Below, in pieces: positions 3,121 through 24,916 of a stretch of DNA of 64,000 bases (positions are counted from its first letter, which is position 1; every line of letters starts with the position of its first letter). The stretch lies in sequence record NC_027364.1; one strand, written 5' to 3'. Below the pieces are notes generated by a model. That model was given only the letters and a program-made list of their open reading frames with translations. It had not been told where the DNA came from and made no database searches. A program made the translations under genes and the position numbers.

Positions 3121-3791
3121 TTCTTTTTCACCTTAATAAAATTATAACACAAAACCACATCAACATCTGGCTCATCACACAAGTACTCAAAACGTTCTTT
3201 ACTTCGTTTAGTACCGATATACTCACCATTCTTATGCCAACGCCATCCACCATCCTTTGGTTGTTCAGACTTCAGTACTGGGTGATAGCACAAGACAATT
3301 TCTTCTGGACCTTCAATTAGGTTCTTGTACTTCTTCATAATCTGTTCAAGCGTATCTGCTACACCATAAGATGAATGCATAAGATAAGACTCAGGACGTG
3401 GACGTCCACTTGGTAGAATATCATCAGTACTATTAAAGATAGCACGGAAGTCTTCAGATGTGTATAGACTTCCATCTTCATGGATCATTGGGTATTCATC
3501 CACGACATCGTAATCAGTGAAGTGTTCAATTGCATGTGCAGGTCGATAACCTGCAAGGATACCTGCATGTTTAGTCTGGACAATAGTCATAACAGATGTA
3601 TTGTTGTTTACATTTGGATCATGAATTTCAGCCCAAAACGGATGATTTGGATCAAAAGTTGCATTTACCAATGTACACTCACCAATGTAGTCAAACATAG
3701 TTTCCTTGAAGTTTAAAGAAACTCCACGTAATGCCCAGTCAGGTGAAGTGATGAAATTAAGATTAACTAACATAAGTATCCTCAGATGCAA
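3111..3791 (-). CDS. conserved phage hypothetical protein
   Basis: SYGVAD...GGWRWHK.GEYIG...EYL.DEP motif set; start uncertain. Confidence 0.7.
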   Translation of the reverse strand: MHLRILMLVNLNFITSPDWALRGVSLNFKETMFDYIGECTLVNATFDPNHPFWAEIHDPNVNNNTSVMTIVQTKHAGILAGYRPAHAIEHFTDYDVVDEYPMIHEDGSLYTSEDFRAIFNSTDDILPSGRPRPESYLMHSSYGVADTLEQIMKKYKNLIEGPEEIVLCYHPVLKSEQPKDGGWRWHKNGEYIGTKRSKERFEYLCDEPDVDVVLCYNFIKVKKKCI

Positions 3792-23107: not shown

Positions 23108-23233
<126 letters not shown>

Positions 23234-23242
23234 GTAGTATTT

Positions 23243-23602
23243 TCAGAAAAAAACCTTATTCAACACTTTAATTATCACAGAATTTAATTCATGTGGGAAC
23301 ACATTTTCATATACTGTGCGTTTCTGAAATTCATCTTCTTCATCAGCACTTAGCTGGAAGGTAATGTATTGAGCATTTATACTATTTATTATATCACGTA
23401 AAGTGTTATTTGTCCTTTTTATTTCTTCAAATGATTCAAAAACAATTACATCGTCATTTATAATAAATGATTCACCATATTCATTGAAAATGCGAATTCC
23501 AGGATTATCTTTACACCAGTTATTGGTATGGTCTGTTGTTAATTTTGAATTCAAAAATGATTTAAGAAACTCTTCATACTTTGAAATGTCTTTAACACTC
23601 AT
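23243..23602 (-). CDS. EExxFQxS-motif family protein (variant)
   Basis: ADEEDEFQKRTVYEN. Confidence 0.65.
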   Translation of the reverse strand: MSVKDISKYEEFLKSFLNSKLTTDHTNNWCKDNPGIRIFNEYGESFIINDDVIVFESFEEIKRTNNTLRDIINSINAQYITFQLSADEEDEFQKRTVYENVFPHELNSVIIKVLNKVFF

Positions 23603-23625
23603 ATCACCAACTTTAATTAAAAAAA

Positions 23626-23958
23626 TGGATGGTGACGCTTTTAAACGCCGCTGTTAATTCAGCTTTATAACCACCCGTTTTAACTTACCTTTCGGCTACC
23701 TTGACGTGGGGCGTACAGGCTACTAAAAGCAACTTCTGTAAACATATTTCCACGCCTTACCCTTTTAAATAAAAGTCCATCCGGTTTTCCAGTTTGGTGA
23801 AGGACTTTCACCTCTAGTTTCAACCTGCTAGTCAAGTAATAATTGCCTATCGTCCAATTATCAAACCCGTCTAGGTTAACATTCACCACTTCCTAGAGTA
23901 CCAGAGATCTTGTTCTGGTTAGCATCGACGTAACTTACACCATATACGTCTGATTGTG
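23626..23958 (-). ncRNA. candidate structured ncRNA (about 330 nt) with tRNA-like 3' domain
   Basis: promoter at 23965-23993, multiple stems, 3' GGGTGGT/ACCATCC-A helix then T run. Confidence 0.5.
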
Positions 23959-23964
23959 GAATTC

Positions 23965-24002
<38 letters not shown>

Positions 24003-24059: not shown

Positions 24060-24473
<414 letters not shown>

Positions 24474-24483
24474 CTTTTTTTTT

Positions 24484-24645
<162 letters not shown>

Positions 24646-24649
<4 letters not shown>

Positions 24650-24810
24650 GTTCGTACCATTATTTCAATAAAGAACCACGGATACGCTTCATGGTTTATA
24701 AGTTTATCGTATTCTGCTGGGTCTGACATGATTTCCCAATGATACTTTCTCCAGTTACCGAAACCTGCATATCTAAAATTAATGTCATTCATCCATTCTT
24801 CATGCGTCAT
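24646..24810 (-). CDS. MTHEEW microprotein (54 aa, not in ORF track)
   Basis: MTHEEWMNDINFRYAGFGNWRKYHW...PWFFIEIMVRT. Confidence 0.65.
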
Positions 24811-24814
24811 GGTT

Positions 24815-24916
<102 letters not shown>

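Follow-up and report, generated by a model that had tools for sequence, protein, structure and literature searches.

The window analysed here is a stretch of 64,000 nt from record NC_027364.1, and the element in question is an interval of about 330 nt (23626-23958) on its minus strand. The 601 nt searched around this interval are 100% identical to Escherichia phage PBECO4 (Asteriusvirus), a jumbo coliphage of 348 kb, in which it lies inside a 457-nt annotation-free gap between a coding sequence (CDS) ending at 24060 and a CDS starting at 23602. The gap is part of the PBECO4 tRNA island, whose tRNA genes (26112-21837, detected by ARAGORN and Rfam) are on the same strand. Judged by comparison with relatives, the interval is composed of three modules, RNA-A, B1 and B2 (the latter two forming RNA-B), each of which has its own distribution and is found separately and in other orders in other phages. 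By the same comparison, the ~330-nt arrangement is a juxtaposition particular to the Asteriusviruses, where an inner promoter is missing, and not one RNA gene. The structured RNAs encoded here are real and conserved. We consider it probable that they form a non-coding transcription unit running from promoter to terminator, in which a double-pseudoknot RNA comes first and a small switch-like RNA, closed by a branched terminator, comes second. The features of the locus are as follows:

23965..23997, minus strand: sigma-70-type promoter of the non-coding unit (TTGACT 23993-88, 17-nt spacer, TAAAAT 23970-65)
23771..23958, minus strand: RNA-A, a double-pseudoknot RNA of ~188 nt, recognised by homologs and covariation
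23950-45/23932-27, minus strand: RNA-A hairpin H1
23919-14/23905-00, minus strand: RNA-A hairpin H2
23896-92/23875-71, minus strand: RNA-A hairpin H3
23861-55/23845-39, minus strand: RNA-A hairpin H4, with the conserved loop GACGAUA
23837-33/23827-23 (S1) and 23831-28/23817-14 (S2), minus strand: RNA-A pseudoknot a, H-type
23812-08/23800-796 (S1) and 23805-02/23778-75 (S2), minus strand: RNA-A pseudoknot b, H-type
23792-89/23784-81, minus strand: RNA-A hairpin H7
23685..23762, minus strand: B1, the 5' domain of RNA-B, in which alternative pairings covary
23756-50, minus strand: B1 5' strand GGCGUGG, which pairs with ACGCC (23714-10) or CCACGUC (23709-03)
23740-36/23718-14 (P2) and 23733-29/23723-19 (P3), minus strand: B1 inner hairpin, with covariation in contig L050
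23696-87, minus strand: B1 GNRA hairpin GCC-GAAA-GGU, from the sequence
23626..23676, minus strand: B2, a three-way junction of 51 nt, recognised by covariation and as a repeated module
23676-70/23633-27, minus strand: B2 outer stem, 7 bp
23669-64, minus strand: B2 junction UAUAAA, from the sequence
23663-60/23653-50, minus strand: B2 hairpin 1, with a 6-nt loop
23649-46/23637-34, minus strand: B2 hairpin 2, 4-5 bp
23626, minus strand: unpaired A after the B2 helix
23657-52 and 23634-29, minus strand: promoter-like hexamers TTAACA and CACCAT embedded in B2 with a 17-nt spacer, from the sequence
23619..23625, minus strand: U7 tract immediately following B2, whose stem is preceded by an A-rich run (UAAAAC); likely intrinsic termination point
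23243..23602, minus strand: downstream open reading frame (ORF) of 119 aa, starting 24 nt after B2 and not part of the RNA

A preliminary description made from the letters alone had placed the promoter, H1-H3, the GAAA tetraloop hairpin and the 51-nt 3' element (a GGGUGGU/ACCAUCC helix that encloses two hairpins, has G.U as its third pair and leaves an A unpaired, here followed by U7), and all of these are present at those positions. The promoter scores 10/12 in a promoter scan and has a TG ahead of its -10 hexamer. Together, promoter (23993-23965) and U-tract (23625-19) enclose ~335 nt, so that PBECO4 may plausibly make one primary transcript of this length. No Rfam 15 family matched the interval, either at the gathering score on the window or at E<=10 on a 391-nt region and the Kuravirus locus, where only noise was returned. 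No description of these RNAs was found in the searched literature, a comparison that excludes the supplement of a catalogue of 10,006 candidates (PMC10690425). The proposal of a novel structured RNA thus holds in so far as the unit is predicted to be promoter-driven and is structured, non-coding and absent from Rfam 15; it fails in that the unit is not a single one in evolution.

Single-sequence folding of the region was mildly better than that of shuffled sequences (z = -1.97 and -2.20). Since folding energies alone are unimpressive, the case rests on the comparison with relatives. The non-coding stretch was retrieved in ~70 phage records by BLASTN, and in the Klebsiella jumbo phages K64-1 and RaK2 the RNA region alone aligns, at 80% identity, while the flanks do not. 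Between RNA-A and RNA-B, K64-1 has an inserted TTGAAC-N17-TATAAT promoter and contig L050 has a tRNA-Arg gene. Among close relatives, JNE01 retains the RNA-B part only and EJP2 retains RNA-A only, together with a B2 copy 3.6 kb away. In phAPEC6, G17 and Sharanji, the 601-nt query was matched in four short pieces only (40% coverage), and these phages are absent from the records matching the RNA region alone.

RNA-A folds into four or five hairpins, H1-H4 among them, and then two tandem H-type pseudoknots. In an alignment of 14 members, evaluated with RNAalifold and by separate pair counts, the 25 pairs of five core helices were 97.1% paired and 14 of them showed changes on both sides. Neither the paired fraction nor the two-sided change count was reached in any of 1000 column shuffles, and shifting the 3' partners reduced pairing to 24-45% (the controls are uncorrected for phylogeny, but the slid ones do retain it). 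The upstream stems therefore do covary, which the preliminary description had named as a check. The loop pseudoknot guessed at in that description is real, and corresponds to pseudoknot b: its S1 has the form GGNNN/NNNCC (GGUGA/UCACC in PBECO4), and its loop GUCC pairs with GGAC in the 3' tail, a helix that occurs across relatives in six different complementary versions (GUCC:GGAC, ACCC:GGGU, GCCC:GGGC, AUCC:GGAU, UCCC:GGGA and GCCU:AGGC). Pseudoknot a (ACUUG[A CUAG]CAGGU...CUAG, 23837-23814), which had been overlooked, combines an S1 of the form NNUUG/CAGNN with a loop A-CUAG that pairs with a downstream CUAG past an A-rich linker; S2 changes from CUAG:CUAG to CUGG:CCAG in Klebsiella phage KP13-16 and in locus L106. 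The unpaired motifs AAGUG, ACGGG, GGACGAUA, UUGACU, AGAGGU and CCGGAUGG are conserved as well, which suggests tertiary contacts or a binding surface.

Several likenesses between parts of the region and known RNAs were judged by eye and dropped: RNase P P4/CR-I, because the GAAAGUCC motif is PBECO4-specific; preQ1-I, because an L2 pocket is absent from pseudoknot a; ZTP, c-di-GMP-I and the T-box GGGUGGU motif, for which there was no Rfam support; and an 11-nt GAAA receptor in the H1 loop, which has the wrong geometry.

In most phages, RNA-A occurs alone. Both the T5-like Novosibvirus and three T4-like groups (Bragavirus of Proteus, Morganella and Shigella) have the first ~187 nt of the interval by themselves, at 82-90% identity. 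Homologs are located in the tRNA arrays of Bragavirus, Novosibvirus, Ishigurovirus, Stephanstirmvirinae, RaK2-like phages and metagenomic contigs, with more divergent ones in those of Aeromonas phages 65 and avDM6, Klebsiella phage KP13-16, a 120-kb IMG/VR contig and metagenomic contigs. In Bragavirus and Novosibvirus, RNA-A is flanked on both sides by tRNA genes at distances of 1-11 nt: in PM2, for example, it lies between tRNA-Gly (2426-2497) and tRNA-Asp (from 2699), and in Proteus phage 1 between tRNA-Leu (to 2499) and tRNA-Ser (from 2699). Only 2 nt separate its end from tRNA-Asn in L106.

BLAST and nhmmer searches were the basis of the family census, together with a small number of pattern scans, of which two were too loose. 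The RNA-A pattern scan of IMG/VR gave four loci, three of them already-known phages, and a second IMG/VR pattern produced chance matches only, among the matches listed. Across the metagenome and species-genome collections the pattern yielded ~220 mostly chance matches, of which nhmmer retained five true metagenomic members. There was no true member among the pattern matches from 185,579 species genomes (loose pattern, nhmmer filter), and none of 5,426 complete E. coli genomes held a copy. When ORFs within 2.5 kb of 12 RNA-A loci were clustered, no co-occurring protein family emerged, only spurious ORFs overlapping the RNA or the tRNAs.

Within RNA-B, both mutually exclusive pairings of the B1 5' strand are retained in three states. 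Relative to PBECO4 and K64-1, the three segments involved change together in L050 (GGUGUGG, ACACC, CCACAUC) and change again in the Kuraviruses (GCUGUGG, ACGGC, CCUCAGC), and in Asteriusvirus TH47 a C-to-U change is accommodated as G.U by both partners. Because the two mutually exclusive pairings both covary, B1 looks like a bistable element, or conformational switch. The Kuraviruses hold homologous 54-76 nt of B1 without B2, and in K64-1, L050 and locus L056 B1 is preceded by a promoter of its own.

The third module, B2, has 15 pairs that are 99% paired, five of them with changes on both sides. Its outer stem reads GGGUGGU/ACCAUCC, GGAUAGU/ACUAUCC or GGAUGAU/AUUAUCC, and hairpin 2 reads GGCG/CGUC, GACU/AGUC, GACG/CGUC, GACA/UGUC or AACAG/CUGUU. 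Covariance models were built for B2 (R1) and for the RNA-A core (R2). R1 identified one copy in the window, three each in K64-1 and RaK2, and one in L248, an unrelated 44-kb IMG/VR phage contig in which it lies between two protein genes, far from any tRNA; a B2 pattern scan gave mostly chance matches, from which R1 retained RaK2 and one new contig. The K64-1 and RaK2 copies are positioned behind tRNA-Ser, at the RNA-B end and just upstream of RNA-A (copy c3), and L056 has an additional copy behind tRNA-Arg. In two copies, the distance to the tRNA gene in front is 8-9 nt. CMSTMSU has lost one G from the 5' strand, so that the register shifts.

Two sets of signals coincide in B2. The first is terminator-like: the U-tract that follows it comprises 6-9 U and is never lost in eight Asteriusvirus sequences, and the stem offers four G-C pairs and one G.U pair followed by one A and then U7. 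At the equivalent place, K64-1 has a plain hairpin after tRNA-Arg, with the same AAUUUUAAUUU tail. As in intrinsic terminators, an A-rich run, a G+C-containing stem and 6-9 U stand at the end of a non-coding unit, but the B2 stem differs from them in enclosing two conserved hairpins with conserved loops. The second set is promoter-like: copy c3 and the L248 copy read TTGACA-N17-TATTAT and the others TTRACA-N17-CAC(C/T)AT, with A2 and T6 of the -10 hexamer, and a G two bases upstream, kept in 8/8 aligned copies. Copy c3 occupies the place of the canonical RNA-A promoter of PBECO4, and the L248 hexamers are followed 27 nt later by an ATG equipped with a ribosome-binding site.

Such a combination is akin to the PeSL cassettes of T4-like phages, which consist of a short conserved intergenic stem-loop and a sigma-70-type promoter with 17-nt spacing (PMC4122927). 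These cassettes occur in hyperplastic regions, where they flank shuffled modules and are thought to mediate module shuffling (PMC4122927). What marks a PeSL-type cassette, namely a stem-loop combined with sigma-70-type hexamers at 16-18-nt spacing in an intergenic plastic region, is also seen in B2: its stem-loop and U-rich tail go together with TTGACA-N17-(T/C)A(T/C)(T/C)AT, and it flanks shuffled RNA and tRNA modules. It differs in that its hexamers lie inside the structure, the -10 being the 3' strand of the stem, and in that it is a three-way junction, whereas the PeSL promoter stands beside a simple hairpin. Since the units downstream of the other B2 copies (a 47-52-aa ORF, a 174-aa ORF, a 186-aa ORF, a tRNA promoter and RNA-A) are mutually unrelated, B2 looks like a general expression signal rather than a gene-specific regulator.

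On this evidence we read B2 as a branched terminator overlapping a promoter, PeSL-like, and not as a tRNA mimic. The preliminary description had itself named a branched terminator, with upstream stems that do not covary, as the outcome that would speak against it; the former is the best reading of the 3' element, and the latter does not apply to the stems. At the RNA level, the stem-loop and U-tract would end the non-coding unit. At the DNA level, the same sequence would act as a promoter, with hairpin 1 supplying the -35, hairpin 2 forming the 17-bp spacer and the outer stem contributing the -10 through its 3' strand, so that the cassette would restart transcription for whatever lies downstream. 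In PBECO4, the embedded promoter or read-through would serve the 119-aa ORF (23243..23602).

The promoter ahead of RNA-A has a relative of the same family at 23233-23205, in front of a tRNA-Ser gene, and a promoter of this type serves tRNA-Met in K64-1. An internal inverted repeat, AGTACT..AGTACT, is present in PBECO4 promoters (window 23965-23997, 23205-23233 and 24444-24472), and in K64-1 promoters (3750-3782 and 4160-4192 of L002) the -35 hexamer pairs with the spacer (TTGAAC..GTTCAA). Given these inverted repeats within promoters of both PBECO4 and K64-1, stem-loops embedded in promoters seem to be a general feature of these phages.

A number of observations weigh against the interpretation of the interval given above. 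The B2 hexamers of the window are weak (TTAACA/CACCAT, 8/12) and were not called by the promoter scan, and the terminator scan makes no call for B2, whose loop of 37 nt is branched. Copies of the K64-1 type have three A's between the stem and the U's, which is poor for intrinsic termination, and efficient termination at c3 would leave the RNA-A of K64-1 wholly dependent on the embedded promoter. No pairing between the B1 switch and the B2 stem was found. RNA-seq contigs skip 23744-23960 and provide no informative transcript ends, and a run of raw reads contained 0 phage reads. Finally, no neighbouring protein family that co-occurs with RNA-A (12 loci) points to a target.

The layout of RNA-B in K64-1, L056 and L050, in which a promoter is followed by a 150-nt structured leader, a stem with a U-rich tail and an ORF start 17-24 nt further on, raises the alternative of a cis-acting riboswitch or attenuator leader, with B1 as sensor and B2 as the regulated terminator of the next gene. 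The two mutually exclusive, covarying pairings of B1 would fit such a device. Yet in contrast to riboswitch leaders, RNA-B is followed by unrelated genes (119 aa in PBECO4, 47-52 aa in K64-1 and L050), and its two domains occur apart, B1 without B2 in the Kuraviruses and B2 without B1 behind tRNAs and in L248. No coupling of B1 to the B2 stem was found, and potential antiterminator pairings between the two did not exceed 4 bp. We regard a leader of this kind as unlikely.

More doubtful again is that B2 represents a decayed tRNA gene or a tRNA-derived processing signal for RNase P or RNase E, with neither charging nor a promoter role. Its presence in tRNA islands, at times with 8-9 nt between it and a preceding tRNA, the UA that follows its 7-bp outer stem at the positions of tRNA residues 8/9, and an AU-rich trailer shared with tRNAs, a plausible RNase E site, are all in keeping with this idea, and the phage group already has a D-arm-less tRNA-like gene. 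It leaves the conserved TTGACA-N17-yAyyAT unexplained, however, and neither the sequence nor the covariance-model comparison detected similarity to tRNA; the L248 copy, moreover, lies outside any tRNA context.

The preliminary description had gone further, reading the last 51 nt as a D-arm-less mini-tRNA with alanine identity that would be released by RNase P, receive CCA and be charged by alanyl-tRNA synthetase (AlaRS), akin to mascRNA or a viral tRNA-like structure. The resemblance to tRNA mimics (the tRNA-Ala minihelix, mascRNA, plant-virus structures and the tmRNA domain) is a 7-bp helix coaxial with a hairpin. In PBECO4, the outer stem has G1-C, G2-C and G3.U (the G3.U70 of tRNA-Ala) with an unpaired A after the helix, and hairpin 2 stacks directly on its 3' strand to form a coaxial arm of 11-12 bp that resembles an acceptor/T minihelix. 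The G.U is retained in 4/4 RNA-B-linked lineages (the window and three others), two copies stand 8-9 nt behind tRNA genes, and the AUUUUAAUUAAAG tail also follows K64-1 tRNAs and, as had been noticed, the tRNA-like gene at 24838. However, the third pair is A-U in 4/8 copies, and in two of these the base after the helix is U and not A. The 3' hairpin loop is of a 6- to 8-nt UUAAAA type instead of a 7-nt T-loop, the 6-nt loop of hairpin 1 is not anticodon-like, and CCA is not encoded, though the neighbouring tRNA-like gene encodes one. ARAGORN found no tRNA or tmRNA in the interval, and no tRNA-like Rfam family (RF00005 and others) matched even at E<=10. The L248 copy between protein genes, the missing G that shifts the stem register in CMSTMSU and the -35/-10-like conserved "loops" at 17-nt spacing are also hard to reconcile with a mini-tRNA. 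We therefore give the alanine-identity 3' end only a slim chance. A slightly slimmer one still falls to the compound proposal that RNA-A is a mobile trans-acting RNA directed against host tRNA metabolism or tRNA-targeting defence nucleases, jointly with an alanylated, D-arm-less G3.U70/A73 minihelix end that host RNase P or RNase E would trim and that would acquire CCA before AlaRS charges it; if true, that end would be a DNA-phage counterpart of plant-virus tRNA-like 3' ends or of mascRNA.

Protein coding by the region is very improbable. A 69-aa GTG ORF (23889-23680, minus strand) exists and is annotated as a hypothetical protein in 121Q (gp129), E9.1 (CDS0520) and some other records, but in K64-1 it holds a 40-nt promoter insert and a 2-nt deletion, in L050 it is split by a tRNA gene, and Bragavirus and Novosibvirus have only its first part, between tRNAs. 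Substitutions track base-pairing and not codons, and frame-breaking indels occur in every candidate ORF of the RNA region among the relatives compared. These indels and pairing-driven substitutions indicate that the 69-aa "hypothetical protein" of several GenBank records is a mis-annotation across RNA-A and RNA-B.

A one- or two-piece transfer-messenger RNA (tmRNA) with ANQNKISGTLGSGEC as its tag, suggested by a short GCU-starting ORF after a hairpin, several pseudoknots and a G.U third pair in the 3' helix, can be dismissed on sequence grounds, in agreement with the earlier remark that the order of parts does not fit one: neither ARAGORN nor Rfam (gathering score or E<=10) reports a tmRNA, the short ORF noted near the 5' end exists and extends across H1-H3 of RNA-A but is not conserved (its start changes, the resume codon GCU being GCA in 121Q and GAA in K64-1, and 5- to 7-nt deletions interrupt the tag frame in SdyM006 and Proteus phage 1, where the H2 hairpin is preserved instead), the 5' end (CCACAAUC) is unpaired with the 3' end so that no tRNA-like domain forms from both, local alignment reveals no similarity to E. 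coli ssrA (z = 0.6-1.6), and RNA-A is alone in most phages.

We return to RNA-A and its possible role. Phage tRNA islands are now viewed as counter-measures to host tRNA-directed defences and translational shut-off. Their non-tRNA RNAs have stayed unexplained, the T4 species 1/2 RNAs for fifty years and GOLLD/ROOL more recently. The T4 species (rnaC and rnaD) are stable small RNAs freed by tRNA-processing enzymes; their genes adjoin tRNA genes of the T4 tRNA operon and are read from the same strand as these. RNA-A is likewise found within phage tRNA arrays, on the same strand and adjoining tRNAs (in Bragavirus, Novosibvirus, KP13-16 and the Aeromonas phages), but it is longer, is built on two pseudoknots and has its own promoter in PBECO4. 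Model R2 did not match rnaC or rnaD, its only match in the T4 region (L006) having E = 5.5 and lying elsewhere in the locus.

Phage non-coding RNAs near tRNA islands have been described (PMC12286853), among them GOLLD and ROOL, structured RNAs of phages and prophages that contain multiple pseudoknots, often stand beside tRNA islands and are non-essential (PMC12286853). RNA-A shares with them the tRNA-island association and the pseudoknot-rich architecture; it is unrelated to them in sequence and differs in size, being ~190 nt long whereas GOLLD and ROOL are multimeric cages of 500-800+ nt, and in its hosts, which, unlike theirs, are phages of Enterobacterales and Aeromonas. The GOLLD and ROOL covariance models gave no match in the window (gathering score) or in the region (E<=10). 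Abundant non-coding RNAs are also known from PA5oct, a relative of PBECO4 (PMC7318152), and model R2 found no match in its ncRNA001/002 or in the Kuravirus region.

Because RNA-A fills the gap between two tRNA genes, tRNA processing would free it: in the T4-like and T5-like phages, 3' processing of the upstream tRNA together with RNase P cleavage at the downstream one would release the RNA. We infer, by analogy with these systems, that RNA-A may act in trans as a stable accessory RNA that belongs to the tRNA/translation module of the phage, and our favoured guess is that it would bind or decoy a host factor acting on tRNA or translation.

Several neighbouring and related elements deserve description in their own right. 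A D-arm-less tRNA-like gene (24838-24916, minus strand) has a UCU anticodon loop, a variable arm of ~20 nt, a canonical T-arm and an encoded CCA; it scores 29.3 bits with the Rfam tRNA model (threshold 29), is not called by ARAGORN, and is followed by a AUUUUAAUUAAAGG tail identical to that of B2, a ribosome-binding site and an ORF. Between this gene and the next promoter lie two adjacent 54-aa ORFs (24646-24810 and 24485-24649, minus strand) that overlap by 4 nt and both start with MTHEEWM, and which look like a tandem duplication of a small gene. In K64-1 (L002, 2334-2444), a structured module is found between tRNA-Gly and B2 copy c3, closed by an ACAGGU/ACCUGU helix and containing the interleaved pairings GUGUACA/UGUACAC and GGGUUA/UAACCC, likely a pseudoknot; in its 3' part it is similar to the segment of RNA-B that holds the GNRA hairpin.

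A tRNA-like RNA of ~170 nt occurs in Kuravirus XT32 (L007, ~1693-1865) and in ev_rybdy3 (L300, ~440-605). It has an acceptor helix UACAGGU/ACCUGUA followed by A and CCA, a canonical T-arm (GGUUCGAAUCC in ev_rybdy3) and ~100 nt inserted in place of the anticodon region, and in XT32, the one of the two loci scanned, it was missed by ARAGORN and Rfam. Also in XT32 (1637-1712), a 76-nt module shows 88-98% identity in many of 157 matching records, mostly Gamaleyavirus, Kuravirus and Klebsiella podophages, where it is sometimes annotated as tRNA-Cys, tRNA-OTHER or tRNA-Undet; this distribution suggests a second widely shuffled small-RNA module.

RNA-A adds to the RNAs of phage tRNA islands a compact family of ~190 nt whose strong covariation makes it experimentally tractable, and whose hosts, phages of E. 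coli, Klebsiella, Proteus, Shigella and Aeromonas, are easy to handle. The close relatives that have no RNA-A, no RNA-B or neither are ready-made natural knock-outs for phenotype tests. If confirmed, B2 would be one 51-bp sequence that encodes both an RNA terminator fold and a DNA promoter, and it would help explain the shuffling of RNA and tRNA cassettes between phages. The exchange of RNA-A among unrelated phage families at 82-90% identity is, in turn, the pattern expected of a selected accessory function.

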